This document shows, piece after piece, positions 1,881 through 32,329 of a stretch of 64,000 nucleotides of DNA (its first letter is position 1; the number at the start of each line of letters is the position of its first letter). The DNA comes from Orbicella franksi. Taxonomy: Eukaryota. Location: positions 24,304,001 through 24,368,000 of the forward strand of contig OZ116701.1 in the NCBI GenBank assembly GCA_964199315.1, in the 5' to 3' direction. A program made the translations under genes and the position numbers. The notes under the pieces were generated by a model. It ran no database searches. It was not told where the DNA came from and saw only the letters and a list, made by a program, of their open reading frames with translations.

Positions 1881-2605
1881 TAGCTACTAAGGGGGGTACC
1901 CATGGGCAATCGCTTAACTCTACAATACTTATTGTATAACAGGAGTTAAAATTTATTTCCGAGTTAATATTTCAGGTGCGTGTTGATTTTAATGTTGATG
2001 GTGTGAACTTGAACTTCAACTTAAACACAAAATTATTGATTTCAAAAGTGAGAGTCAAGAAAAATGTCTCATGTTTGCCATTGCATCATGGCATACTTAT
2101 GGCCAGTGTGGAAATTAAAGGACGATTGTCATGATAAAACGCATGTGCAGTCTTGATTGAACAATCAAGAGGTACAGGTGAGGGAAAACAGTTTCTACTT
2201 TTTTCACTACAAAGGCATTCAAAATTTGCAATTTCCAAGCCTGGTTTGTCAATCGAATATTTTCTTTATTATCTGCTTATTCGTTATTTGCCTAGCCACA
2301 AGTGTCATGCAAATGTTTGAGTACCTGCATGAATAAAACTGAGAGGAAACTGCAAGGATATCCTTGCAAAACTCTGAGGTGTGCGTGTGGAACACAGAGA
2401 AAGCCATGTCCAAGGGCCTTAGGGCCAGTTGTGAGGATGATTTTGCCCACCTGATTTGACCATCTAGGGGAACGTTTTTCTTGTGCAAACTTTGTTTAGA
2501 TGCAGAATATTTACAACTTTGTTCAAAGAATACAGCAGACATCCACAATGAGACAGGACAGTAGTAGTCGTACTCTTTGCAAAGCTGCCTACAGAAACTA
2601 CATTT

Positions 2606-5101
2606 TACTTCTTGAACTTGAACAGAATAAATTTATACAGGGCTCAACTCTGAGAGGAGCAGTGTAGATAATAAACAATGGTAGCAAGACTTCAATTCAT
2701 TGTTTTATTGCAACAACGCTGTTTCGTATGGTCAAAAAATGACCACACTCATCAGGCAATATCAACGAATGACTATTAAATTTCGCGGACTGGCAATTAA
2801 AAGCTAACTTTAGGTTGCTATGAGATATAAAAACAGTTGCTATGATATGGAAAAACAGATGCTATATAGCATTGAAAAACTGGCAATAAAAAGCAGTGGC
2901 TATGGGACTTAAAATCTGAAATCATGTGTTACTTAAACATTGCATTACTTGGTCACAAAGTTCTTGAGTAGGTATCTGTTTCTGTGGGGGCACCCACTTG
3001 CTAGTTTGTTTCTCTTGGTTAGAGTACACAAACTCGTCTTACAGATGATCACAAATTTCTCAAAAAGACATAAATTACATTTGTGCCTAATGTTGCTATA
3101 AGGTCTGCACAGCTTAATTCTCCACTTGATGGTAAAACATTTGTTGTTGTCTTTTAGTGTCCAAATGTGTTTAAATAGCTCAGTTTCATTTGTCTTGTTT
3201 TGGTGTTGAAAGGATGCTGTGTGATTTCTGTAACACTCTTTAAAATTTCTGGCAAGGCCCTTGTATGAGTCTGATGAAGTTTGTGTTGTGAATGTGGCTT
3301 GGTAAACTACATTTTGTGTGAGGCATTTTCCGTCCAGCGGGCATTGATTCTTTTTTTCTGCAGTTGCATTCTTAGATGTTTGTTTGTGTTTGCGACTGGT
3401 GGTAATCTGATAGTAGTGCTTTGTTGTGTGACGAGATGATACTCTTCATGTTGGGCATGCAGGAGTAGCTGAGCTTCAGTGTGTGCTTGTTGAAGATCTT
3501 GTGTAGGGGGTGTCCGTTTGGGAAGCATCTGTCGATGATGTTTAGGAACTTCCTTCCCAGGTTAGTTTTCACGTTAGCATTCCATGGGGGGTTGTAGCAT
3601 ACAATTTTTCTTTGGCGATTTCTGTTGCGCTTTGGCTGTGCGTGATACGTGAGCTTGTGATTGTAGCCATTCTTGTCAAGCGCTTTCTGGTACGGTGAAA
3701 TCGCGTTGTCGAAAAACTTTCTGGCTAGTTGAGATGCTGGTCAGTCGTTTGTTGATGTTTTCTGGGATGTTCTTTAGTGGTGCAGGTGGGTGATTGCTTT
3801 GTTGGAGGACGTAGAGGATTTTGTTGTTGGGTTTCATGCAGGGTTTGTAAGATCCTCTTGTAAGGTCTAGGGTTATGTCTAGGAAGTTTATGGTTTTTTG
3901 TTTCCTTCCATGGTGATTTTGAGGCCATTTGACTTGAAAATTTCACTGACTTCTTGTTTCGCTTTCTTGGTTTGTTTAGGTGTTGCTTTGCACACTGCCA
4001 GACCATCGTCATGGTAGAGACCAACTTGGCCTTTAAATTTTGGTGTGATGAGGGACAACATGTAGGTGCCAACGAGTTCGCATGTCTCAGCTCCATCATA
4101 TGAGCCCATTGTCACGTCGAACAAGTTGCTGGTGTTCTTCTTTTCCCATGGCGTGTTCTGGTGATACAACAGTGATTTTTTCGCGTGTGATAATGTGGCG
4201 GTCTTGTGGTGTGATATGTGTGAATTGGGATGCATAGTCAAATGCCTTTGTGAGAAGCTGCTTGGAAATGGATGGGTAGAAGTCACATACATCGAAAGTT
4301 ATGAACACGTGTTGAGATTTGTTTGGGATTGGTTGAAACCATTCGATGACATTTGAGGTACATCTCCATAGATTTGCTTTTGTTACTTTGATTATCTCTT
4401 TGTTTATGTTGTCTAAAATGTGCTTGCTGATTATGCCGATCTCTGATTTTGTGGGATTTACGAGTCTGCATGTTGGGTTGTTTGTGAAATCAGGCTTGTA
4501 ATCTTTTAATGTTATGAATGCGGCTCTGCTCACGGAAACTTCAATGCGGTCCTCAAGTTTAAGGTCTTGGGCAATCTCTTTGTCCATGGAGGTAATTGAA
4601 TCTGGGATGCTTTTGCTAGTTTTCTTGTAAGCCTTAGTCACGTTTTTCTGTAGGAGGTTTAAATGGTCTTGAGGCTCAGCCTTGTAGTGGTTGGTAGTTT
4701 TGTTGGATTTTACATAGATGTTCTTATCTTGTCAGATTTCTTGTACGTCTTTGTCAAGTTTTGCTTGGAAGCTATTTGTTGCAGTGCAGTTGGTTTTAAA
4801 CTCCACTCATTGGATCATATTGAGCATGCTGTCTTCAAATTCATCGAGGGCCCTAATATGCGGTGGTGGGCATTTTGATTTGAATCCATACGTTTCTTTT
4901 TCGTTGTTAACGGTGTCGTGGTTTTTCGAAAAGAAGAAGGCTTTCCAATGCATTCGGTATATTAAGGATTCTGTTTTCTCTATCAGGATTTGTAGATACT
5001 TGCTTCTACTTGCCAGCGGGATGTTCTTGGTCAAATAACTGAAATCTTTAACCTGGTAATTCATTCTCAACAGTGCTCAACTTGGTGAAAGGAGCAGTAG
5101 A
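2606..5101 (-). mobile_element. Penelope-like retroelement copy A: near full-length RT + C-terminal GIY-YIG, frameshifted (coding ~5070 to 2945)
   Basis: ORF pieces include [64 protein letters not shown] and C-terminal ETELFKHIW...KCNLC...CPHRNRYLL. These lie in several frames. Confidence 0.9.
2707..2760 (-). ncRNA. Type I hammerhead ribozyme in the PLE 3' region
   Basis: AUUGC-CUGAUGA-GUGUGGUCA-UUUUU-UGACCAUAC-GAAA-CAGCGUUG-UU-GCAAU: intact CUGAUGA/GAAA core, 5-bp stem I, 9-bp stem II, very short stem III, GUU cleavage triplet. Confidence 0.85.
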
Positions 5102-6972
5102 TACTTCTTGAACTTGAACAGAATAAATTTATAGAGAGCTCAACTCTGGGAGGAGCAGTGTAGATAATAAACAATGGTAGCAAGACTTCGATTCATTGTT
5201 TTATTGCAACAAGGGTGTTTCATATGGTCAAAGAATGACCATACTCATCAGGCAATATCAACAAATGACTGTTAAATTTCACAAACTGGCAATTAAAAGC
5301 TAACTTTAGGTTGCTATGAGATATAAAAACAGTTGCTACGATATGGAAAAACAGATGCTATTTAGCATTGAAAAACTGGCAATAAAAAGCAGTTGCTATG
5401 GGATTTAAAATCTGAAATCACGTGTTACTTAAAGATTGCGTTACTTGGTCACAAAGTTCTTGAGTAGGTATCTGTTTCAGTGGGGGCATGCACTTGCTAG
5501 TTCGTTTCTCTTAGAGTACACAAACTCTTCTTACAGATGATCACAAATTTGTCAAAAACACAAATTACATTTGTTACTAATGTTGCTATAAGGTCTGCAC
5601 TGCTTAATGATTCTCCACTTGATGGTAAAAGGTTTGTTGTTGTCTTTTAGTGTCCAAATGTGTTTAGATAGCTCAGTTTCGTTTGTCTTGTTTTGGTGTT
5701 GAAAGGATGCTGTGTGATTTCTGTAGCACTCTTTAAAATTTGTGGTGAAGCCCACGTATGAGTCTGATGAAGTTTGTGTTGTGAATGTGGCTTGGTAAAC
5801 TACATTTTGTGTGAGACATTTTCCGTCCAGAGGGTATTGATCCTTTTTTCTGCAGTTGCATTCTTTGACGTTTGTCTGTGTTTGTGACTGGTGGTAATTT
5901 GATAGTAGTGCTTTGTTGTGTGATGAGATGATACTCTTCATGTTAGGCATGCAGGAGTAGCTGAGCTTCAGTGTGTGCTTGTTGAACATCTTGTGTAGGG
6001 GGTGTCCGTTTGGGAAGCATCTGTCGATGATGTTTAGGAACTTCCTTCCCAGGTTAGTTTTCATGTTAGCATTCCATGGGGGTTGTACCATACGATTTTT
6101 CTTTGGCGATTTCTGTTGCGCTTTGGCTGTGGATTATACGTGAGCTTGTAATTGTAGCCACTCTCATCAAGTGCTTTCTGGTACGGCGGAATCGCGTCGT
6201 CAAAAACTTTCTGGATAGATGAGATGCTGGTTAGTAGTTTTTTGATGTTTTCTGGGATGTTCTTTAGTAGTGCGGGTGGGTGATTGCTTTGTCGGAGGAT
6301 GTAGAGGATTTTGTTGTTGGGTTTCATGAAGGGTTTGTAAGATCCTCTTGTAAGGTCTAGGGTTACGTCTAGGTAGTTTATGTTTTTTTTGTTTGCTTCG
6401 ATGGTGATTTTGAGGCCATTTGACTTGTTTCGTTTTCTTGATTTGTTTAGGTGTTGCTTTGCACACTGCCAAACCATCGTCACGGTAGAGACCAACTTGG
6501 CCTTTAAATTTCGGTGGGATGAGGGACAACATGTAGGTGCCAACGAGTTTGCATGTCTTGGCTCCATCATATGAGCCCATCGTCATGTCAAACAAGTTGC
6601 TGGTGTTTTTCTTTTCCCATGGCGTGTTCTGGTGAGACAATGGTGATTTTTTTTGTGTGTGTGATAATGTGGCGGTCTTGCGGAGAGATATGTGTGAATT
6701 GGGATGCATAGTCAAGTGCCTTTGTCAGAAGCTGTTGGAAATGGATAGTTAGAAGTCACATACATTGAAAGTTATGAACACGTGTTGGGATTTTTTTGGG
6801 ATTCCTTGAAACCATTCAATGACATTTGAGGTACATCTCCATAGATTCACTTTTGTTACTTTGATTATCTCTTTGTTTATGTTGTCTAAAATGTGCTTGC
6901 TGATTATGCTGATCTCTGATTTTGTGGGATTTATGAGTCTGCATGTTGGGTTGTTTGTGAAATCAGGCTTGT
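5102..6972 (-). mobile_element. Penelope-like retroelement copy B: 5'-truncated, directly upstream of copy A (pseudo-LTR/tandem arrangement)
   Basis: Homologous to 2606-4470 at an offset of ~2496. ORFs 5552..6091 (GIY-YIG: VVYQAT...SYVGFTTNFKECYRNH), 6200..6715 and 6749..7018. Confidence 0.9.
5203..5256 (-). ncRNA. Type I hammerhead ribozyme, second copy
   Basis: AUUGC-CUGAUGA-GUAUGGUCA-UUCUU-UGACCAUAU-GAAA-CACCCUUG-UU-GCAAU. Core intact; stem III loop differs from copy 1. Confidence 0.8.
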
Positions 6973-9723: not shown

Positions 9724-10861
9724 TGTGACAAGATCACTTTAGCTCATTTTCAGTTCTAATTCCCAAACTTTTTTATTAGTGTTGTGTTGTTATTTTTCTT
9801 CTTACTATTTGGGTTATTCTCCTACATTAGTTTGGTTTCCTTACACACCTTATTTTGGTATGTGTTGGTGATTCATTCCCACACACTTCTCTTAGCTAAG
9901 TCCTGTTGTGTAGGAGAAGTTACCTCCTAGTTCCCTTAGGTAAATCCTGTATTCGTGGGCAACAAATACACTCCCTAGCCTTATTTGGTTTAGAGTTATT
10001 CCTACAGTTTCCTCAAATCGGTTATAAATTGGCAACCATTTGTTCAGCAAATTCAGTTGATTCAGTTGGTCTATTCTGAGCTATACGTAAGTTCTCAAGT
10101 CAAGCACTGGTTTAGTTCGAATGCTATATTCTCAATAACCCTTGGTATGTAGTGCATTATTTCGTTTTATTTGTACTTTTCTTTAAGGCTTTTGGTTTAG
10201 TTCGTTTCTTTTATTTCATTAGTTCAGTTAGCAGTCGCTTTTAGTTGCCTTTACTAGTTTTGTGTTTTTGTGTCGTATTATTCCTTAGTTTTCTTGACCT
10301 TTAATCAGCACAGCATGTAGCTTTATCTCTGTTCCTTTGTTTTATAGTTTTTGCTAGTAAATATTGTATTTTTCGCTTACCACATCCTTGTTGATTACTT
10401 GTGATTGTTTGCACAAATCCAAATTCATTTCTGTTCCTTTATACGTTTTGTAGCCTGTTTTTATCACTCTAATTACTTGTGTGACTAGCTTGTACACAGC
10501 TTAGTACTATTGTGTAATCCTGTAACTTGAACCTTTTTAGTTCTGCATTTCATGTAATACTCAACAACTGTTGACAGTTTTTGTCACACAGTTCCTGTTT
10601 CTTTATTTTTGTCATGCAATCTTCCTATTGCAATTGTCTTGTTATTTACACCAAATTACTTTGTTATTTCTTAGCTAAGTTAGTTTATTTTTGTTTTGTT
10701 TTACTCTTTATTAGCATTAGGCTTATTTTAGTTTGTTTATTGTATTTCAGTGTTACTCGTTCCCGTTTATTTTGTTATTGTCTCCGCTGTTTTGTCAATA
10801 AACTCGTAAATCGTACACTCGTATCTGTCGTAACTACGTCGACCGTTTTGGCTGTCTTACA
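9724..10861 (+). mobile_element. Probable solo LTR (1138 bp, very T-rich) nested in the pogo 3' region
   Basis: Termini TGTGACAAG...GTCTTACA with a 4-bp direct repeat TGTA on both sides (9720-9723, 10862-10865). AATAAA at ~10797; no coding signal. Removing it gives a normal-sized pogo. Confidence 0.6.
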
Positions 10862-12436: not shown

Positions 12437-15400
12437 TCAAGATAGTTCCAGATGACACAACTTTGAAATTGGTCTGGTCAATTCATTCCTTCCGACTTGA
12501 ACCTTGGCCACTCTTACGTGCCCATCTTTTCCTGGGAAAACTTTGGTGATTCGACCAAGGGGCCAGTGTCCTCGTAGTGTATTAGGTGAAATGACTAACA
12601 CGACATCCCCGACTTGAAGATCTCGCTCAGTAGTCAGCCACTTCCTTCTGATGTTAAGAGTAGGTATCCACTCCCAAATCCATCGATGCCAGAAATGCCT
12701 CACTAATTCCTGGACTCTTCTCCACCTTCTTTTTTGGGTTAAAAGCGGTGTGGTCTACTGATTCTGGTGCAAATCGTCTGCCGATCTGACCAAAAAGGAA
12801 GTGGTTTGGTGTGAGTGGAACGTCATCTTCTGGATTAGCCGATTGGTATGTCAGTGGTCTTGAGTTCAGAAGTGCCTCCGCTCCAGTAAAAGCTGTCGTT
12901 AACTCTTCGTCTGTAATATCTGCATTGCCCAGAATAGCATGTATTGCTCGCTTTGCTGCTTTGATCATAGTTTCATGAACGCCTCCAAAGTGAGGTGCAA
13001 GTGGAGGGTTGAACTTCCAGTTTACACCTTGGGTTGCCATTGATTTAGTAATTTTCTCTTGGTCCAGCTCTTTGACCAAATCACATAACTCCTTGTTAGC
13101 TCCAACAAAGTTTCCTCCATTGTCAGATAACATCTCTTTTGGGAGGCCTCTGCGGTTGACCATCCTGTAGAAAGCATTAAAAAATGAATCGGTGTCAAGT
13201 GCATAGGCCATTTCTAGATGGACTGCTCTGGACGCTAGGCAAGTAAACAAGCACAAGTAACGTTTTTATCTACGTGTCCTTCCCTGTACGGTGACGAATG
13301 GCCCTTCAAAATCCACAGCAGTCTGTGCAAAGGCTCTCAAGGAAGATCGAAGTCTGATCTGTGGGAGAGGAGCCATGACTTGCTTTGCAGCCTTAGCTTT
13401 TCTTTTTCGACATTCGTTGCACTCCTTCTCCCATTCACGAATTTCTTCTTGACCACAAATGATCCAAAAGCACGTCGATAAAGTCGCCAACGTTTGATTT
13501 GTGCCTCCCGCATGATTCCCTTTCTCGTGATAATGTTTGACAATCAACTTCGTCACACAGTTCTTCTGGGGTAAAATTATCGGAAAGCGAGCGTCATGTG
13601 GTAGGAATTCCGCATACTTGACGCGTCCATCACATCTCATTTGACCCTCCTCGTCAAGCCATGGTCGTAATCCGAGCAACTTGCTCTTCTTTGGAAGCTC
13701 TCTTTGTCTCTGAAGCGCTAAATACTCATCGGGAAACGCCCTCCTTTGTGGACTCCTGATCACCTGAAACGTAGCATCTTCGATTTCTACCGACTTTAAT
13801 TCTCCAGTTTCTCTCTTGCAACTTCTACAATTGTCTATGAAATGACGCACCCATGCTTGAACTCTTATCAACCTTAACCAACTTGAAAAGCGTTTTGGGT
13901 CGAGACGCCACAACTGATCATCATCGTGAACTGAAACCATTGCCCAGTCTTCGTTTCTTGCTTGTAAGCTGTCTTGTCTGTCTTGAGCCTTTTTCTTGAT
14001 TTCTTTTTCTTCTGTAACTAAATCTGCTTCAATTCGATTGACAGGCCAGTATGGTTCTTCTTTTTGAAGGAAATCGGGACCATTCCACCACTTTTCCTCC
14101 TTGGTCATGTCTGATATTCTCATGCCTCTTGTAATTAAGTCAGCAGGATTCTCAGGGATTGAAACGTAGTGCCACTGTTTTGGATTTGTCAAACTTTGAA
14201 TTTCTCCCACATGATTTGCTACAAAGGGTTTAAATCTCCGACTTCTTCCTCTAAGCCACCACAGAACATTCATACTGTCAGACCAAAAGACTGCTTGACC
14301 CAGTGCACCACTGAAAACTCTGGAAGTAGACTCAGTAAGTCTTAGACCCAGGACTGCTGCCAACAGTCTAAACGAGGAATACTTGTTGTCGTTAGTGGAG
14401 CAACTTTTGACTTGGCTGCGACTAAGCGTGTCGACACCGATCCACTCTCATAGACAACTCTAGAATAGATAACAGCACCATACGCATCTTGCGACGCATC
14501 TACAAATGTATGCAAAGTTTCTGAGAGCGCAACTTGTTCTGGGCCAAATCGTAAACATCTAGAAACTTTGATCACTGGCAATTCTTCCAACTCACAGAAC
14601 CATTCTCGAGACTTGTTGTTCAACTCTCCTGGGCATAGCTCATCCCATTCAAGTCCTGTGGTCCACATTTCCTGCATCACGATTTTCGCTCTAGTTTTCT
14701 AGTACCTTGGTAGAATTGGACATCCATTTATGAGCGTGCATTCCAGCTTTGTTCCACAGCTCTTCTAGCTGCTTGTACAGCTCAATACCTTGACTATCGT
14801 CCGACATTGAGTCCATGCTGTCGTCCATATAGGTTGACTTGGACACTGTTTCGGCAGCTAAGGGCAGCTCATCTTTATGCCTCTCAGCATGAAATTGAGA
14901 GACAAACTGGGCATGAAATGGTGACGAGTTAACTCCGAAATCTACTCGGTTGAATTGAAACTCTTCTGACTCTTTCTGCTGATCCATCGATCTCCATAAG
15001 AATCGTTGACATGATCGGTCCTCTGGAGCGACCTCAATTCTCAAATACATCTCTGCGATGTCACAAATGAGTGCAACGGGGCGTCTTCTGAATCGAAGCA
15101 AAACATCGTTCAGATCTCTTTGCAAGTTTGGACCTTGGTAGATGACATCATTAAGAGAGATTCCGTTACACTTCGTGGAAGCATCGAATACGATTCGAGT
15201 CTTAGTTGTGGCTCTGTCAGGTCGCACAACGGGAAATGTGGCAGGTACCATTTCCTTGATGGTTTCTCCTCGGCTGGGTCGATCTTGCGAATGTAGCCCT
15301 TCTCCAAATATTGAATAATATTCTTTGAGTAGGCTTCTGCTATCTCTGGGCTTTTCAGTAACCGCTTTTCCGTGTTGCACAATCTGCGCAAATTCCCAGA

Positions 15401-24196: not shown

Positions 24197-25225
24197 AAAA
24201 AAAAAAATGTTTTTGCATTTTTGTTTGTTATGTAGCATTTGACTTTTTATCAAGTTTCAGCTGATAAACCTGTACTGTATACTTTTCATGTGAGTTGCTG
24301 GAAGCTCTATTACACAACTATTCATACAACTGTAAGCTAACAGCCACTTGAAGATTAATATTGAATCCAGAAACAAACATGGATGCACTCCTCTATCCAG
24401 AAATTATTATGCAAACTACTAGTCAATCATCAACATATACTTGTAACATCACAAGGATCTTCATGTATCAAAAGAAGCATGCACACTACATGAATAATAT
24501 GTTTTTTTATATTGCTTTTACTGCATTTACAGTAAAAGTTTACCACATTTTGCATCATCTTAAAGCTGGCAATCGACAAAGGAACCTACTTCCTGTAAGC
24601 AAATTGATTATTCTTATTCCACGTGACAACATTTCTTTCCAGTCATGACAAAGCGTATTCAGAACTTCAGTGGAATCCACACCATTGGCAAGGTGTCTAT
24701 TTGGGACCAACTGTTGAATTCTCAGTTGCTGACTTTATTATGTAACTGGCTTAGATATTGCTGCAAACCCTCTTGACAGTACATCTGCAAGTTAATTTGA
24801 TATCTGTAAACAGTCTACGATGAAAGTAATAACAACTCATCTATGTTGATACCTAATAATCAATATTACTTTCTTTATTTCAATTTATAACCTTATCTTT
24901 CTAGTGATGGTCTATTCACTTGTAGTACTTTAACTCCCGAATACTAACATTTAAAACTAACACTCCAACTGAATGAAATAAAAGTAAATCTAAGTCCACA
25001 CAAGTACGCTTTGCAGACCTATTTTTTGACTGCTCGTTGACTGCTGGATTGCCTCTTTCACTTCTTCTTGGAAGTGCTAGCTCGAAGTAGTTCAGCAGAG
25101 ACTGTGCAGTCATCGAAGCTTGAATGAGGCAGACGCACCACTTGTGCTTGGAAGAGGAGTGATGAAAATACTCTGTACTCTGTCCATCTCATCTACTCCG
25201 TTACACCCATGTAAAAAAATAGTCA

Positions 25226-25450
25226 AGATCCCAGGTGGGATCCCCGGTGGGATTTTGGAACGGGATCCCAGGTGGGTTCCCAGGCGGGATCCCGGGTTTG
25301 ATCCTGGGTGAGACCAGTGATATTGGTCACATGTTCAAAGGTGGGATCCCAAGCAGGATCCCAAGCGGGATTCCACCTGGGATCCCTGATCCCGAGTGGG
25401 ATTTCAGAAGGATTCTTAGGTACGACCTTGTAGGTGGGATTCTGGGCAGG
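25226..25450. repeat. Left subterminal array, ~12-bp unit gggatcccaggt
   Basis: gatcccaggtgggatccccggtgggattttggaacgggatcccaggtggg... The GIPG-repeat ORF 25235..25480 is a by-product. Confidence 0.85.
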
Positions 25451-25749
25451 ATTGAAAAATTCTCTGGATATAATTTCTAGTTGGGTGAAATATCAGTACA
25501 AGAATGTCATACAACACTTAAAATAAGTGTAAATTAACTAAAGAATAAAGCATCAATTGAAATTTACCACACCAAACATTGATCTTGTGCCAAAAGGGAA
25601 AAGTTAATTTTATTATATTATCAGATCTACATATAACAAATTATTAAATCAATTTACAATGAGAAATGCAAAATGTTTGGGATATTACAATTAAAAGATT
25701 TCAAAATATTAACAAAAAGATGATAAAAAGTATACTTGTAATAAAAAAA

Positions 25750-28046
25750 TTATTTTCTTTTGTTTAAATTACGGCATTTGTCAGCGATTTTTTTGCTAAA
25801 TGTTCATAGGCTCTTTTTTGAAGTTGTTTAGTGCCTCCTCCTCAGTCCACTGGAAACAGTGAGCAGGATGGGCTGTTGGAACAAACACATTAATAGCGAA
25901 TTATAAGAGAGAAAGCAATCAAAAATCTGACTGCATGAGACTTGTTTAAATCAACTGTCTTTCTGATAATTAATCAATAAAGTACAATTCTATACAATTT
26001 CTCCCTCGTAATTACAAACATTTCATATGAAGCTCAATGAAGAACATGCATGCAATAACCTTAAATTAGGTTTTGAATGTGATGGTCCAAATTGTTTTTT
26101 AGAATACCGGTAGGTAACAAATTAAGGTACATATGCTTTGAGAACTTACACTGAATGGCACCAAGGATATTTTTGTCAAGGGCCTTTTTTCCATTTTGGC
26201 CAGAGATATTGGATGATGCCTGTGTCTTAAGGTCAACAAGGATGTTAAGAAGATTAAAGGCTAGGGATTTTGGGACACCCCTAGCCTGCTCCTCTGCCCT
26301 CCTAATGACCTCTGGAGAGGCCAGCACTCCAAACTTCTTGTGCCCAATATACCCTAAATGTACAAAGTAAAACAATCGGCCAGTTAGAGCTAATTAGTCA
26401 CAATTACATGTAACAGGATCTCATAAAAGTACACAATGAATTTTTCTTGCAGGATATTTATTACAGTCATTTTATCTTATCATATTTATGTTAAATCTGT
26501 CATCACCCCAGTAATAAATGTGAGATATTCATAACTATAAAAATCATTATTAATTCTTTAAATAATAAGTTTACATGGGTGTTTAGCATACAATTGCAGG
26601 AATAGACTGGTTGGATATCCATTGGAAAAATATAAAGGAAATTTAAGTATTTCCCCATATCAGTCAAATCAACAGAATAAAACTGGCCTAAATGTAGATG
26701 GAGATTCTTTTCTCTATATACATGTAGGAGACTTGAGAGCAGGAGAAATGGTCAATGATGCTACAGAATTTTCCAGTCAATTTTTGAAGAGATTTTCAAA
26801 AAAGCAAAATACTGTCATTAAGTTCCATTTGCTTTCCCACAAAAAAATTTATAAAATGACTTGTTAGTTTTAAATGGTCAGAAAAACACTCCAATTCAAG
26901 GTTAGGGGAACACAAACCAGAGCTTTCTTTTGATCCAGATGCAGCCTGTGATTGTGGATCAGTGTTTGGCTTTGCAGAACTTTCTTCCTTCTCCTGCTCC
27001 TGCTCCTTCTTGGGGGTTTCCTGTACAGTGATGGGTGTTGCAGTACTTATGGGTGAATGGCTCACCACTAAGTTGAGAGGCCTGGAAACCTTAAAAAAAT
27101 AGAAAGAAAAATTTCTGCATCATTATTGCAGTAAAGGAAAATGATTTTATTTATATCCTAATGGGGTGGCATTTTAAAAGAATTGATCAAACCTAATTAC
27201 CTTTTTCCAGAAACTTAACTTGCTATCTCCTCCAACTTTTTCTCATTTGCATTTTTCAGATAAGGCTAAGATTGCATTGTCTAAGGCATCAAATCGATCA
27301 TAGATGCCTTTAACTGATGTTGCAAACATTTCCTGAAAATGACAATAATTTCGATTGATACCACACTTTTTAAAATGCTATCATATCTTAAGAATGGTAT
27401 AGTGTATTTACAGCTTTATTGAAAACTTATTAGCAATGGTATATTGCAGTTCCTGAATTTTGATTGGTTAACAAGCAATGGTATATGAACTAATATACCC
27501 TGGCCTACATTAGTATGGTAGACTGTGTACATGTCAATGAGAACAGCCAGGGAGCTCAAATATTGCAATTCTTTGGATGTTTTTAATAATTAAAAACAAT
27601 TAAACTACTTGTGTTTGTTGGATATGAAATAGTTTTAGCGAACTCGGCACTACACGCCCTTATTTGGCTATCTATAACCATCTCATATCCAACACAGGCT
27701 CATGAAATACCATATTGTTAAGTATATCTGAGAGTTAACAACAGTTATTCTGTTTGGGAAATTCTCCTGTTTTTGATGTGCGACATTTTCATTCGGAAAT
27801 GGTAAAGTTAACAAACATTCCTTACTCATAATGATTGAGAAATTAAAACACATTTGTCCCACTTGCCTGTGCCTTTTTTTAATATAAGGTCCCCTATTGT
27901 AACTAACCTTTAATTTGCCACTAAAATCTCTCACAAAATGAAGTTTGTTTATCAGACTGTCTCTTCGTGGCTGCAACCAACCCTCTGTCTACACAAACGG
28001 TGGTCCCACTATCTGAATCACTGCCTTCAATGTCATTATAATTTTC
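25750..28046 (-). pseudogene. Spliced BEN-domain protein gene (accessory gene of the CACTA-like element); 5' exons not found
   Basis: GT-AG exons 28046-27908, 27332-27201, 27089-26918, 26353-26150 and 25872-25750. The middle three join with compatible phases. The BEN-like region reads EEQARGVPKSLAFNLLNILVDLKTQASSNISGQNGKKALDKNILGAIQ...FSKKIADKCR. In-frame TGA in exon 27332-27201; indels in the first and last exons. Confidence 0.7.
27617..27693. mobile_element. Small palindromic MITE-like insert in a BEN-gene intron
   Basis: Perfect 11-bp inverted repeat gttggatatga...tcatatccaac. Confidence 0.5.
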
Positions 28047-28468
28047 CTGTTCAGTAAAACAAAAAGACATTTCTATTACTAAGTAACACTGAAAAATCGA
28101 TAACTTTAAATGTCTCCAATTTATAATCATCAGTCTTTGCCTTACCCATATGCCCCTGGAAATTTTTGCAGAGAAATGCCATCAACTTGTGTCAGGTTTT
28201 CCACTTACTATCTTGAATTAAAAAAGGAACCAAAACTGTCTAAAAGGGTACTGTTTACAAGCTGAGCACTTAAATACCGATTCTTAAGCAAAGGCTAATT
28301 AACAGTTTTCAAAGTTCTGAGCAGTTGAGGTGTGAATGTGTTCATTTAGAATAAACGTTTAAGTTCAGGACAGAACAGGACAACATTTTGCCAAGTGTCA
28401 AAACAGAGTCTGTTGGTTAAATTAATACATGTATGTTTATTAGTTCTATACCAATCTTTATTGTATAG

Positions 28469-31400
28469 ACAATCCAGAAAGTACCTTCTTTTGGCTGGGT
28501 TGTGGTGTTCAAGCAAAAAGCCAAACATGCTCACTTTTGGACAGCCAGTGATAAGTGCTTTTTGTGATCTCTACCAAAATGGTAAGTGCTTTGGATGGAG
28601 TCAACCCTGTAAAGCCATTATAATGCTGACCTTCATCTAATTTCTCCTTATGACACCGAGTGCTCATGCAGTATAAATAACAACAGCAATAATAATAATA
28701 CTTTATTCAAATACAAATACAAATACAAATAAAAAATTAGTATTTTTTGTATTTGAAAAGGAGGACCATGAGGTTAACCCTATTTAGGTCCCCTGACTAT
28801 AGTTAATTAAAATAATTTACAATCTAAAATTTTAAAATCTAAAATAAATAAAATTTTAAAATCTAAAGTATCTACTAGAAATCAGTATCTAGCACTGAGG
28901 TGGCAGTAGTATATAATAATGGATGTTCATCCACTTTTTTAAGCTGTAAAGTAATGTGAGAAAAACTTTGTCTCTTACGGCCCTTTAATGTACTTCCTAA
29001 TTTTTTTCGTCATTAATATTACAGATCATTCAAAACTATTGTTGTAGGAATTCCTGTTAATGTGAATTCTGGAGAAAAAAGGATCCATGCCACACTGCTG
29101 TTATGTACTGAAGATCTTCAGGCCAAATCATTAGTAACAAACATGAAACAGTACAATGGGGAAAGTAGTTGTTCGACATGTTTTGATTCTGGGCAGACTG
29201 TAGGAAAAAACAACCTTCACAGGGTATGGCCTCATACTCCAAACATGAAGTACAGAACGCATAAGTCTATGGTGAAATGTGCTTATGAAGCTTCAAAATC
29301 AGGCGTGTCGGTATGTATGTAATTCTAAACTCAGTTTTATTAGCAAGTTATAGTTAATGTCCTGCTGTATTAATTTATATAAGGTTGCTTTCCTTTAATC
29401 CAATTATTACCTGAGATTAATCAAATTCTAGCACATCCATTGAACAAAAGGAAAATCTGAAAATGGTAAAATGATTAAATTATGTTGCTACTTATATTCT
29501 ACTTGATGAATTAAAACGGTACGGTGCTACAAGTGAACAAAAAGCAACATCTGTGCTGCCCCAAACTGGCTGTCGCAGGAGCCAATGGGTTAAGACCAAG
29601 TGTGCAGTTCAAAATAATATAGCCAACATTTTTTTTTAGTTTTCTTACTCACTCTCACATTTCCTGTACTACAGGTGAAAGGAGTTAAAGGTGCCTCTGT
29701 ATTTATGCTCTTCAAGGAGTTCAATCTTGTTGAAGGATTTGCACCAGACTGGATGCATGGCGTTTGTCTTGGCTTGATAAAGAATTTGCTTGCATTTTGG
29801 CTTAATGGAGAACATAAAAGCAAGGACTTTTACATAGGGAACAAGGTATACATGTACATGTAAGGGTGTTGATTAGGTTTAAGCCTAATCAACACCCTTA
29901 CAATAAATGGCTTAATGTGGAATTTCACAAGTGTCAGAACAGTTTAATATTCCTATTTGGTTCATCTCACACTATGAGATTCAGCATTCAATTTAGATGT
30001 CACATTTAATTGTTAATTGTTACTTGCTTATAGCATGTGACTGTAAAGTTTAAAGGTAAAAACAAAAATAAAAAAGTTAAGACAATCAAATCAATTCTGT
30101 TACAGATTGCTGCCCTAGATAAATGTCTGACCTCAATCAGAGTTCCAGATGTGATTTCCTGAAAACCTAGAACACTAGAAGACAGAGCACATTGGAAAGG
30201 TAATTAGCAGTTATTCATTGCAATGACTTCACGCCTGAAGCTATAGCATGCATGTCATAGGCCTTAACATTACTATTTACCACGTAAACAATAGTAAGTT
30301 GTTTGTAATAATTATTTACATATACCTTTATTTCAGCCACAGAATTCAGGGCTTGGTTGCTGCATTTCTCAGTGCCAGTGCTGATGGGGATCCTACCTCC
30401 TCCTTACCTACAACACTACTCTTTGATGGTTACAGCAATGTCACTTCTTGTTAGCGAGAAAATATCTCACAAAGACCTCAGTGATGCAGAAAAGATAATA
30501 GACCTGTTCTGCAAGGAACTTGGCACCTTATATGGTAAATATTAATTTTGCATGATGTAATATCGTAGCTACCTCAAAAAAAAAGGAAATCCTAGGCAAT
30601 GCCTTTACCTTGTTCTTGCGCATTTCAGACTGCTTTTTCTTAACCATGTTGTTTTTCTTCTCTGATTAGGTGAAAAGGCAATGACTATGAATGCCCACCA
30701 GTTGAGCCATTTTGTCTACTTTGTAAGGCTTTATGGTCCTTTGTGGGTGTACTCTTGTTTTGGCTTTGAAAACATGAATGGCTGTTTAACAAGCTTGATC
30801 CATGGAAAAAGACACATTGCAGAACAGGTACCTCCAGCCTTAAATTTGTAGTTGTAGTAATAAAAGTAAGAGTTTAAAGGATAGAAATGTTAGTATTCTT
30901 TTTAAAGTACATGATCGTATAAAATTGTGTTCATTGAACATCTAAAAACATCATATTTTTTCCCTTTTCATAGGTAGCATTTGCACTGTCAGTCTTGAGG
31001 AATCTTCCATCTCTTGTCACAAAACTGAATCCCTCACTCAACTCTTCATCAGTGATGAAATTTACAAAGAGGTTGTCATGTGAACATTCCAGGTAAATAA
31101 GAGCTGTTGCAGAGGAGGATATTAAGAAATATTTTGTAATTCTATACTGTATCAACACTGTACTTTGGTAAAGCTGATTATGAAAATAATAACACAAGAA
31201 AATTAGTCTCCCTTGTTTATACTGCTTAGCCTTTCCCTTGTTTGTACTGATTAGCCTCCTGCCAGTTGGGTTTTTCAACAAGTTTATATGCGCTTTGCAA
31301 TATTTGTTTATTTATTTACAGTGTCCACAATAATTAGCACATCAGTGCTTAATACATTGACACTTAAATAAAGTTATTTATTCATTTTATTTTTATAGAA

Positions 31401-31800
31401 TTATTTATTAAAAGTTTTAAGTTGTGCAAATTTTACATGCCATTGATATTTACAATGGTTAAAAAAAATTAGGGCTGCTGTCGATCATAGTAAAAGTGCA
31501 TTAACATTATTTTGAAGTGAATGAAAAATTATGCTTCTTTTAAGTTTGTGGTGTAAGTCATTTATTTCATTTTGAAAAATGAACATGTACATCCAGAAAT
31601 TAGTGTCACTTCATTTCCTTTGTCATTGTTTTCTAACAAATTGTATTTTATTATTAAATCACATGTCTAAAGTAGTGTACTGTAACAACTTTGTTGCTGT
31701 TAAGTTGGAACAACTGAGGGATATTTGTGTCAAGGTGGAAGTTGCTGGGAAAAATGATGTGTTCATAAGTAGATTCCCAAATCTGGTGGAGAGAAATTAG
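28469..31800 (+). pseudogene. Intron-rich EnSpm/CACTA-type transposase (N-terminal exons not found)
   Basis: Phase-compatible GT-AG exons 28469-28581, 29048-29310, 29675-29845, 30106-30199, 30337-30534, 30670-30827 and 30974-31092, plus a last exon ending at 31800. Motifs: LAGLW..KP, DLQAKSLVTNMKQYNG..SCSTC, DWMHGVCLG, WKATEFRAWL, HQLSH, GPLW..SCFGFENMNG.L...HG, SRFPN. One TGA at 30160-30162. Confidence 0.85.
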
Positions 31801-31994
31801 GTTTATCTTACAGACAGAAATCTATGGTTATACATGCAGTGACCAAAAAGAATATGATTTAAAGAAATAAAACATGGCATGTACAAGTACATGTGTTCGT
31901 ATAATTTTATAAGCTGTGCTGCATCTGGGAGATATAGTTATAAAAATAGTAAAACCTGTTCTGTATTTTTTAATCAGTGACATTTTTTACTGCC

Positions 31995-32310
31995 CCTCCT
32001 GTGATCCCAACTTTCCTGCCCACAATCCCTACTGTCCTGCCTGGGATCCCAACTTTCCAACCAGAGATCCCTACTGTCTTGCCCAGGATCCCAACTGTCC
32101 CAGCTGGGATTCATACTGTCCTGCCTTGGATGCCTACTGTCCCACCCGGGATCTCAACTGTCCCACTCGGGATTTCTACTGTCCCGCCTGGAATCCCAAT
32201 TGCCCCACCCGGGATCCCAATTGTCCCACCCGGGATCTCAATTGTCCCACCCGGGATCCTGGCTATCCCGCTTGGGATCCCAACTTTCTCACACAGGATC
32301 CCGGCTATCC
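31995..32310. repeat. Right subterminal array, 21-bp unit cccacccgggatcccaattgt (~15 copies)
   Basis: Clear 21-bp period. The reverse complement of its core (gggatcccgggtggg) matches the left array (gggatcccaggtggg). Confidence 0.9.
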
Positions 32311-32329
32311 ATTTTCCAGGAAGTGATGC

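Follow-up and report, generated by a model that had tools for sequence, protein, structure and literature searches.

The locus examined here raises the question of why a transposase gene stands head to head with a gene for a BEN-like protein, and whether the two belong to one mobile element. Within the window, the whole 64-kb stretch of Orbicella franksi DNA that was analyzed, the region from 25206 to about 32321 is a single defective, internally deleted copy of a two-gene stony-coral DNA transposon (Table 1). A first-pass annotation had proposed a two-gene element; the pairing is confirmed, but the proposed limits, 25204-32325, have been corrected at both ends. On balance we favor the view, together with the mechanism discussed below, that the coral family belongs to the animal branch of the EnSpm/CACTA superfamily, as an autonomous-type DNA transposon with the window copy as a member.

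Table 1. Features of the window copy (positions are those of the window).
Feature	Position	Strand	Evidence or remark
Flank dinucleotide CA beside left terminus	25204..25205		Possible target-site duplication; relatives have 2-bp duplications
Left (BEN-side) terminal inverted repeat, CCCATGTAAAAAAATAGTCAA	25206..25226	+	Homology with L001, L006, L007 and L012 begins exactly here
Left subterminal array, about 14 units of 12 bp (GGGATCCCAGGT), two blocks	25227..25453	+	Tandem-repeat finding (TRF) and repeat search
BEN-like gene, last exon (C-terminal helix region)	25751..25872	-	Acceptor AG at 25874-25873
BEN-like core exon (GYIGHKKFGV...LDKNILGAIQ), intact	26150..26353	-	27 homologues; splice sites read
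Linker exon rich in Ser, Thr, Pro, Glu, Lys	26918..27089	-	RNA contig joint 27089/27905, CT..AC ends
Coiled-coil exon (QEMFATSVKGIYDRFDALDNAILALSEK...), stop or frameshift	27215..27340	-	Translation; matches cDNA-like contig L009
Upstream exon, acidic DSDSG region	27905..28046	-	RNA joints 27089/27905 and 28046/28145, both CT..AC ends
Internal deletion junction	28371..28378		Collinear alignments to relatives break here; transposase N-terminal exons gone
Transposase gene fragment, seven exons, single frame	28464..31096	+	GT-AG introns; metatranscriptome joints; homologue alignment
Transposase exons	28464-28581, 29048-29310, 29675-29845, 30106-30199, 30337-30534, 30670-30827, 30974-31096	+	All introns GT-AG
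Nested high-copy repeat in transposase intron 1	28684..28979		Missing from L005; not part of the transposon family
Right subterminal array, about 15 units of 21 bp (ACTGTCCCACCTGGGATCCCA)	31989..32310	+	Core inverted relative to left array
Decayed right terminus, ATTTTCCAGGA where relatives have ATTTTACATGGG	32311..32321	+	Compared with ends of L005 and L006; last base +/- 1-2 nt

Limits and integrity of the element

The ends were read by comparison with relatives. The window copy, L005, L006 and L012 all have termini of the form 5'-CCCATGTAAAA...TTTTACATGGG-3', rather than the degenerate CAC.. ends (CAC...GTG) of the first-pass annotation; none of the four has plant-type CACTA termini, and CCC is present at the termini of every copy compared, as in animal "TRC" elements. 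Because the relatives end in this way, the element starts at 25206, and the preceding CA is thus flank or target duplication; no CA matching it is visible at the decayed right end of the window copy. That end lies at the decayed terminus listed in Table 1 and not at 32325. The reverse complement of the left terminal repeat forms the opposite terminus in L005, L006 and L012. The inverse termini are perfect in L006 (8983 bp) and L012 (4601 bp) and near-perfect in L001/L005 (about 15.8 kb), and these three complete relatives are flanked by perfect 2-bp target duplications: CT for L006, AT for L012 and TT for L001/L005. A full element has terminal inverted repeats of 11 bp or more (CCCATGTAAAA), 2-bp target duplications, and two genes read outwards from a central region, the 3' end of each being followed by an array of repeats with the core GGGATCCC and then by the terminus.

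Compared with L001/L005 the window copy has lost about 5.7 kb internally, and compared with the compact L006 about 2 kb; the loss includes the exons that encode some 380 residues at the N terminus of the transposase in full copies. The copy is defective, lacking the N-terminal half of the transposase and having stops or frameshifts in both genes, and cannot be active. The repeat nested in the first transposase intron has a summed DNA contig depth of about 2100, versus about 42-130 around it.

The transposase gene

The first-pass annotation described a multi-exon EnSpm transposase on the forward strand. Gene, strand and exons are as described, but only the C-terminal 370 codons or so remain, and the gene is a pseudogene with an internal TGA at 30160-30162 in addition to the terminal TAA at 31094-31096. 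Residues 180-379 of the homologues are present in L005-L008 and missing here. The spliced product aligns to P0141, P0157 and P0143 with 33-53% identity over about 330 residues, and corresponds to residues ~377-705 of P0157. These three homologues score 65.4, 48.1 and 33.7 bits, respectively, against Pfam Transposase_21 (PF02992), all above the curated cut-off of 28.6 bits, which identifies them as Tnp2/Transposase_21 proteins and bears out the earlier assignment to an EnSpm/CACTA-type element. Some transposase homologues also match Plavaka in the Pfam scan, and weaker matches to DUF4218 were seen. Single transposase exons from the window have no Pfam match, and the N-terminal ~180-380 residues carry no assigned domain.

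Both genes appear spliced in coral metatranscriptomes. All six transposase introns are represented by GT..AG joints in two of them, and two joints of the BEN-like gene, with CT..AC ends when read on the forward strand, were likewise found in two.

The BEN-like gene

The divergent, multi-exon, reverse-strand gene reported at first pass is present as described, head to head with the transposase gene. Its product has a coiled coil, then a linker of low complexity, and a BEN-like domain at the C terminus; small BEN factors similarly have their BEN domain at the C terminus, behind a coiled coil. The window gene is a pseudogene, broken by stops or frameshifts. Its last exon has a premature TAG at 25798-25796 followed by a +1 frameshift in an A run, and the conserved IADKCRNLNKRK tail can be read in a different frame; the same exon is intact in L003, L004, L006 and L008, and a spliced Logan contig of a relative (L009/P0025) joins it to the core exon. 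The coiled-coil exon is skipped in the single RNA contig seen, and its equivalent in L006 is intact and reads LQEMLATSMRGINERFDRMEKAIQVLVEQQKANEKKLDELMASK. In the NCBI model P0017 the equivalent of the linker exon is spliced straight to the BEN exon. The reading frame of the upstream exon is incoherent in the window copy.

The domain itself appears to be BEN-like and closest to that of BANP. As its own test, the first-pass annotation had named Pfam PF10523, the absence of a BEN profile hit to count against it; for this profile there is indeed no match above the gathering cut-off of 23.2 bits. The window core exon has no match to PF10523, and the best family members reach 12-13 bits (E 0.081 and 0.17). 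With the Pfam threshold missed, the assignment rests on two other comparisons, and in that form the proposed identity stands. A family profile (A1) searched against the PDB matches the BANP BEN domain (7yug, 8yzt, 7yuk) with E 1.2e-6, the next match having E 1, and a clean profile built from the exon only (A2) matches the same domain with E 1.4e-4. The similarity to this solved BEN domain is significant, and it is the only BEN domain in the PDB that was matched; the alignment covers the domain core, including the SN(I/L)SGQ..GKK.LD segment. Among the 100 best named clusters of language-model neighbors in the Atlas, 51 are PF10523 BEN (scores 0.92-0.94, 196-208 shared features) and another 36 are DUF4806, which has been described in a published paper as a BEN subtype.

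A BEN fold is recognized as a five-helix globular fold with a middle loop (PMC10789644). Two AlphaFold models of the domain are of low confidence (pLDDT 59.5 and 60.8), and a Foldseek search with such a model gave no match with E <= 0.001, BANP ranking third (E 2, 36% identity over 78 columns). The Pfam matches of the BEN-like products at E <= 10 include neither a transposase nor a TnpA family.

Subterminal arrays

Tandem-repeat finding and the orientation of the units confirm the mutually inverted repeat arrays that had been noted at both ends. On the left, TRF reports 12-bp units at 25227-25297 and 25344-25375, and a further repeat search extends the array to 25453; sites at 12-bp spacing fall at 25262/25274/25286 and 25343/25355/25367/25379. 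On the right, it reports a 21-bp unit repeated 14.5 times, at 31989-32292. The two arrays are inverted relative to each other, as the left units read GGGATCCCAGGT and the right units hold the reverse complement ACCTGGGATCCC. All eight exact GGGATCCC sites in the 64-kb window fall within the two arrays, against an expected 0.36 sites, and none of 100 shuffles reached eight. In L006, as in the window copy, the core is confined to the two arrays, and it is absent from the central, apparently bidirectional control region between the genes. Short subterminal arrays in inverse orientation, a feature of EnSpm/CACTA elements, occur in the window copy, L005, L006 and L012. The 21-bp spacing on the transposase side is seen in the latter three as well, and the asymmetry, 12 bp on the BEN side and 21 bp on the transposase side, is kept across subfamilies.

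Linkage, selection and the role of the second protein

The order array, transposase, BEN-like gene, array is shared collinearly by the window and seven other loci (L001/L005, L002, L003, L006, L007, L008 and L012) from four coral ENA assemblies, which agrees with the co-occurrence expected in the first-pass annotation. The two genes are linked in eight of the ten loci examined. L010, a distant Transposase_21 locus, has no detectable BEN-like frame, and the pairing is therefore not general to animal CACTA elements; L004 has the BEN-like gene and an array, but a transposase is missing within 10 kb. Alignments between subfamilies, at about 75%, are limited to exons and arrays. The BEN-like gene is under purifying selection, with dN/dS of 0.03-0.16 for the BEN exon across subfamilies, dS being saturated. 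L006 and L007 differ at six positions in about 9 kb (99.9% identity) and have different flanks, which shows recent mobility of these relatives and suggests that the family is currently active. Linkage, selection and these near-identical copies at different sites support the earlier view that the gene is a component of the element and not a trapped host pseudogene.

In maize En/Spm, TnpA acts on 12-bp subterminal motifs, pairing the ends for the transposase. We propose that the coral BEN-like protein would dimerize through its coiled coil, would bind the palindromic GGGATCCC cores of both arrays, and would thereby mark and pair the two element ends for the transposase in the same way; it may, in addition, act on the chromatin of the element, as a shield or a regulator. 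The solved BEN domains of Insv and BANP recognize palindromic sites, and Insv was crystallized as a dimer on DNA. From the palindromic core and these habits of BEN domains, the protein probably recognizes the repeated GGGATCCC sites at both ends; its DNA binding, its target and its need for transposition are points that we infer. A stronger version, which we offer tentatively, as possible rather than probable, is that in this animal CACTA lineage the BEN protein binds the ends as an indispensable partner of the transposase and is a convergent replacement for TnpA that reads the GGGATCCC arrays, and that the multi-copy BANP-like or DUF4806-type BEN genes of cnidarians and other animals are, at least in part, such transposon genes or their derivatives.

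We considered the possibility that an unrelated host BEN pseudogene lies by chance between a transposase fragment and repeats, as both genes are broken in the window and the BEN part has the DNA contig depth of a single copy (42.1). This is extremely improbable, being contradicted by the collinear arrangement in the other loci with their different flanks, and by relatives in which both genes lie between precise termini and target duplications. The gene might instead have been captured from a host and be carried without function for the element, like Pack-CACTA cargo; published Pack-CACTA work shows that CACTA elements capture host fragments, and the closest solved relative of the domain is the host factor BANP. 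A passenger would decay, however, whereas the BEN exon has remained constrained between subfamilies whose introns can no longer be aligned, every full-length copy, like the deletion derivatives, has the complete multi-exon gene at the same place and in the same orientation, and the young copies that are 99.9% identical have it intact. We regard capture as unlikely.

A different division of labor within the same two-gene transposon deserves more weight, although we think it doubtful: the N-terminal region of the transposase would bind the arrays, and the BEN protein would act as a transcriptional repressor or a governor of copy number, as a chromatin factor of anti-silencing or insulator-like type, or as a link to host chromatin that directs the choice of target. 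Known BEN proteins are described in published work as factors acting on chromatin or transcription, among them repressors and insulator proteins, about 380 N-terminal residues of the transposase are available without an assigned domain, and the BEN protein could use another motif in the shared central control region, which lacks GGGATCCC. Against this, no other conserved motif was seen in that region, introns and intergenic DNA being unalignable between subfamilies, and the palindromic array core is the only conspicuous conserved non-coding feature across diverged subfamilies and is of the type bound by solved BEN domains.

Comparison with known systems

The end-binding role that we propose invites comparison with maize En/Spm (TnpD plus TnpA), which shares with the coral element a Transposase_21-family transposase, a second element-encoded protein, multi-exon genes, unequal left and right subterminal regions, and multiple short subterminal motifs that are inverse at the two ends (12 bp in En/Spm, 12-bp spacing in the coral element). 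The coral element differs in having CCCATG... rather than CACTA termini and a target duplication of 2 bp instead of 3 bp. Its second protein, BEN-like and with no Pfam match to TnpA-type families, comes from a separate opposite-strand gene with its own introns, whereas that of En/Spm arises by alternative splicing of a single transcription unit.

Also comparable are the animal CACTA "TRC" elements, whose terminal inverted repeats start with CCC and which make 2-bp target duplications (PMC1636069), as do the coral relatives in which duplications were read. SmTRC1 of Schistosoma mansoni encodes extra, alternatively spliced proteins that lack a transposase domain and are similar to nothing else, for which a TnpA-like DNA-binding role has been proposed (PMC1636069). 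The coral element resembles SmTRC1 and its relatives in its animal Transposase_21 transposase and its additional protein without a transposase domain, but this protein is separately transcribed, conserved and BEN-like, and each end of the coral element carries a long GGGATCCC array.

The domain core aligns with BANP, as noted above; unlike BANP and other BEN factors (Insv, BEND3, BEND6), the coral gene is multi-copy, lies inside a mobile element and falls below the Pfam BEN threshold, and its candidate site GGGATCCC differs from the CGCG element of BANP. BEN-like modules have been described in mobile elements before, as DUF3504 of the Crypton tyrosine-recombinase transposons and as DBD1 of Tn3-family TnpA, which reads the terminal inverted repeat. 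There too a BEN-type module is employed by a mobile element, but as a domain of the recombinase or transposase in unrelated element classes, whereas the coral module is a separate gene in a DDE element of CACTA type.

Implications

As the first-pass annotation had suspected, we found no description of an architecture pairing a CACTA-type transposase with a BEN gene in the searchable literature. To our knowledge, two-component CACTA biology, with a transposase and an end-binding protein, is understood only from plants. The accessory proteins of animal CACTA elements have been called unrelated to anything, their role being guessed (PMC1636069). The coral family offers an accessory gene with a recognizable BEN-like, putatively DNA-binding domain, and the palindromic core of its phased arrays is an obvious candidate site; with near-identical natural copies that suggest current activity, these make the end-binding hypothesis directly testable. 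The family would add a DDE transposon to the short list of users of BEN modules, so far Cryptons and Tn3. It also bears on the origin of animal BEN transcription factors and of the multi-copy DUF4806/BEN genes of cnidarians. The Oculina "uncharacterized protein" P0017 and gene models like it probably represent genes of transposons.

A recurrent two-gene unit in coral genomes

The best-conserved BEN exon has 27 close relatives, nearly all in coral-type assemblies, plus one NCBI model from Oculina patagonica, and flanking DNA was compared for nine of the 27. At three loci (L001/L005, a single contig; L002; L003) the entire order seen in the window is preserved collinearly at about 80% identity: right array on the transposase side, transposase, BEN gene, left array. 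They carry 5.7 kb of additional sequence at window 28371-28378, a segment that contains the N-terminal transposase exons missing from the window (homologue residues 180-379). For L006, L007 and L008, members of subfamilies further removed from the window copy, alignment (70-83%) is confined to the arrays and the exons of the two genes and does not extend to the introns, a signature of coding constraint. A 4.6-kb deletion derivative, L012, still has an array at each end, as well as the BEN gene and the 3' exons of the transposase; L011 is fragmentary; and L004 is rearranged, having the BEN gene, an array and a terminus, with no transposase found within 10 kb. Counting the window, eight of ten loci have the arrangement array, transposase, BEN gene, array. 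The co-occurrence put forward in the first-pass annotation is thus upheld, by this recurrence and by constrained BEN exons across subfamilies, and we regard it as very nearly certain that arrays, transposase and BEN gene make up a single mobile unit. The copy in the window is dead, a product of internal deletion, and what gives the feature its value is the family. At a distant Transposase_21 locus, L010, the family HMM found no BEN-like frame and no arrays were present, so we do not claim that the pairing is general.

Two of these loci have features of their own. The 3' exons of the L004 BEN gene are duplicated in inverted orientation (5175-5897 and 9959-10684, 97.8% identity) next to an open reading frame with an HMG box (12703-13161); this may reflect rearrangement of the copy, or else a BEN gene that is leaving the element for an independent life. 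A different Transposase_21 gene occupies L011:1-1283, its 731-aa product about 29% identical to that of the window, 9 kb from a family BEN exon, and there is therefore more than one CACTA-type lineage in these corals.

Coordinates of the genes and subterminal arrays, in the window unless a locus is named
Feature	Position	Strand	Remarks
Best-conserved BEN exon (GYIGHKKFGV...GKKALDKNILGAIQ)	26353-26150	-	intact in window
Last BEN exon in relatives	L003:11219-11338, L004:5289-5411, L006:10458-10577
Transposase exons	28464-28581, 29048-29310, 29675-29845, 30106-30199, 30337-30534, 30670-30827, 30974-31096	+	canonical GT-AG borders
Left array, 12-bp units (GATCCCAGGTGG register)	25227-25297 and 25344-25375		Tandem Repeats Finder
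Right array, 14.5 units of 21 bp (ACTGTCCCACCTGGGATCCCA)	31989-32292		Tandem Repeats Finder

The transposase gene

Single window exons of both genes gave no Pfam match, being too short. An exhaustive phmmer search with exon 29044-29310 returned 401 relatives, and three of these proteins matched Pfam Transposase_21 above the curated cut-off of 28.6 bits (P0141, 65.4 bits; P0157, 48.1; P0143, 33.7); the long relatives also have Plavaka matches, and DUF4218 matches below threshold. When the long relatives were placed on the window by tblastn, coverage began at about residue 377 of the 706-residue P0157. The plus-strand gene is, by this homology, an EnSpm/CACTA-type transposase of which the C-terminal half only is present. 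The multi-exon EnSpm transposase originally proposed is therefore right as to family but incomplete. Its seven exons join as one frame of about 370 codons ending in TAA (31094-31096), with one internal TGA (30160-30162) where relatives have an arginine codon. Intron 3 contains a palindrome (29859-29902) of perfect spacing, with 22-nt arms that are 95% complementary and no spacer.

A BEN-like second gene

The minus-strand gene lies head to head with the transposase. The window exon and all its relatives fell below the Pfam BEN cut-off of 23.2 bits (best E 0.17 and 0.081, about 12.6 bits). In a single-sequence search of the PDB with the BEN exon, the top three matches were all the BANP BEN domain (E 0.37-0.5); a profile of 27 family members reached E 1.2e-6 against the same three BANP chains (the next match had E 1), and a cleaned profile without intron read-through still matched BANP at E 1.4e-4. 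A protein language model placed BEN clusters second and third for the window exon (0.94 and 0.93), and for the spliced relative P0025 it gave PF10523 on 51 and DUF4806 on 36 of the best 100 named clusters; a passage in a zebrafish paper citing Pan et al. 2023 treats DUF4806 as a BEN subtype. Confidence was low (pLDDT 59.5 and 60.8) for two AlphaFold models of the domain, built from family alignments A2 (exon-only, cleaned) and A3, and a Foldseek search of the PDB with the first low-confidence model gave nothing significant, BANP ranking third (E 2, 36% identity over 78 columns). The A2 profile run against a set of 5.8 billion proteins found the same coral family only, without annotated BEN proteins, a search probably limited by its word prefilter and length window. 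The sequence-profile evidence points to a BEN-like domain of BANP type; the BEN identity suggested earlier thus stands on the profile matches to BANP, but not on the Pfam BEN check, which stayed below threshold for exon and relatives alike.

Upstream exons of this gene encode an acidic stretch, a coiled coil and a Ser/Thr/Pro/Glu-rich linker. The window copy is damaged at three places: a stop or frameshift interrupts the coiled-coil exon, the N-terminal part has no coherent frame, and in the last exon a +1 frameshift comes after a TAG at 25798-25796. That last exon (...W.EEE...NWKREP.N..QRIADKCRNLNKK) matched Pfam GeBP-like_C weakly in 5 of 23 members (best E 4.5e-4), which we judged a coincidence of a lysine-rich helix. 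DNA depth rises two- to threefold over 27373-27766, where contigs have loose ends (27431, 27672) and where the segments 27616-27638 and 27672-27694 form a 23-nt inverted repeat; the stretch is probably a small nested repeat within a BEN gene intron.

Subterminal arrays and termini

The palindromic core GGGATCCC has eight exact sites in the 64-kb window, all within the two arrays (chance expectation 0.36; none of 100 shuffles reached eight). Allowing at most one mismatch, there are eight left sites in two runs at 12-bp spacing and 11 right sites spaced by 21 bp or multiples; just one other site falls in the 6.5 kb that separates the arrays. A repeat search extended the left family to 25453 and paired the two arrays as inverted repeats. 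Since the left unit is GGGATCCCAGGT and the right unit includes ACCTGGGATCCC, the arrays are mutually inverted, as had been noticed from the sequence at the outset. The 21-bp unit consists of a 12-bp unit plus a 9-bp partial unit, and the 12/21-bp asymmetry is kept across subfamilies.

Element ends were placed where homology stops between copies with different flanks, and read 5'-CCCATGTAAAA... and ...TTTTACATGGG-3'. In L006 and L012 the two ends match perfectly as inverse repeats, and in L001/L005 nearly so (BEN-side end CCCAAG); they are flanked by 2-bp duplications of CT (L006), AT (L012) and TT (L001/L005). The family is a cut-and-paste element with terminal inverted repeats and 2-bp duplications. 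The left end of the window copy is at 25206, so that the CAC.. terminus formerly placed at 25204 takes in two bases of flank; on the other side a decayed ATTTTCCAGGA (about 32311-32321) forms the right end, and a terminus motif search across the window matched the left end only.

Over about 9 kb, L006 and L007 show 99.86-99.92% identity; their flanks differ, and the only large difference between the two copies is a 2.2-kb insertion in the central intergenic region (L007:6332-8523). The L006 exons that were checked are open (all of the C-terminal half of the transposase; BEN coiled-coil, linker, core and last), and its N-terminal transposase exons are stop-free matches; the first BEN exons of L006 were not located. 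Near identity at different flanks, with open exons, indicates on sequence grounds that the family moved very recently in the coral carrying these copies. No open reading frame spans the insertion site once the element is removed, and insertion dating by this route gave nothing. Summed DNA-contig depth reaches about 2100-3100 in two stretches inside the element (28684-28979 and 31116-31500), compared with about 42-130 in the surrounding sequence, and many loose contig ends lie at 31294, 31331 and 31378; the first stretch is absent from L005, and both look like nested very-high-copy short repeats, MITE- or SINE-like.

Transcription

The sequencing runs best matching the stretch are coral DNA runs, and six coral metatranscriptomes contain 38-50% of its words. 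We aligned contigs from two metatranscriptomes, one poly-A run of a related species and one DNA run to 25600-31500. All six transposase introns are joined with GT..AG borders in contigs of both metatranscriptomes, intron 1 having two alternative acceptors (29024 and 29047), and summed contig depth over the exons is about 50-100. BEN gene RNA contigs have a depth of 2-7, skip the broken coiled-coil exon and show CT..AC joints at 27089/27905 and 28046/28145, hence splicing on the minus strand; the BEN core exon is also joined to the last exon in L009, a spliced Logan contig from a diverged relative. Transcription of the window copy, or of a near-identical one, follows from several RNA contigs that match the window at 99% identity or more. 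One metatranscriptome contig (28246-28581) runs from the first transposase exon of the deleted copy upstream across the deletion junction, and transcription accordingly seems to start in the former BEN-proximal part of the central region. In the DNA run the BEN half is a single 3392-nt contig of depth 42 and the transposase half has depths of 61-130, suggesting few copies at least 90% alike in that individual, a figure to be read with caution and not as copy number.

A possible role for the BEN-like protein

The two outward-reading genes share a central control region, and the palindromic-core arrays, which are phased, lie solely in the subterminal regions. By analogy with TnpA, which acts on 12-bp motifs of En/Spm (PMC1636069), a BEN protein dimerised through its coiled coil may bind the GGGATCCC cores and, once bound, would assemble or pair the ends for the transposase; we put the chances of this at about even. 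Binding of the arrays is predicted because BEN domains of known structure bind at palindromic sites (the Insv crystal has a dimer on DNA), because the core is the sole non-coding feature surviving between subfamilies, and because the BEN gene is strongly constrained inside the element. The main rival has the arrays bound by the N-terminus of the transposase, which has no assigned domain, and gives the BEN protein a role in regulation or chromatin.

A BEN gene passively captured by the element is poorly compatible with a BEN-exon dN/dS of 0.03-0.16 between subfamilies (synonymous sites being saturated) and with exons that align between subfamilies where introns do not, as well as with near-identical copies in different flanks, bounded by termini and 2-bp duplications. 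We reject a chance juxtaposition of a BEN gene with a transposase and repeats, as the collinear arrangement recurs in copies with different flanks, defined termini and 2-bp duplications.

Relation to known elements

By its transposase, termini and duplication, the element is placed in the EnSpm/CACTA superfamily, in the animal TRC-like branch; CCC termini and 2-bp duplications, described for animal CACTA "TRC" elements by DeMarco et al. (PMC1636069), are common to TRC and the coral element. What sets it apart from En/Spm and SmTRC1 is the second protein, which has a gene of its own with divergent transcription; this protein is BEN-like, rather than TnpA-like as in En/Spm or an orphan as in SmTRC1. 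BEN-type modules also occur as DUF3504 in Cryptons and as DBD1 of Tn3 TnpA, but there the module is a domain of the recombinase or transposase itself, whereas the coral element has a separate BEN-like gene. Full-text searches of the literature turned up no account of a BEN gene carried by a CACTA-type element, in keeping with the initial impression that the architecture had not been characterised, although Repbase was not covered and an unpublished library entry is possible. The feature is real, and what is new is a separate BEN-like gene in an otherwise known CACTA-type element. Hydra genomes contain 54-69 DUF4806 genes and 13-47 DUF4218 genes among their expanded transposon-type domains (PMC7642931, Table 2), and this joint expansion alongside transposase domains hints that the pairing of BEN and CACTA transposase may be wider in cnidarians.
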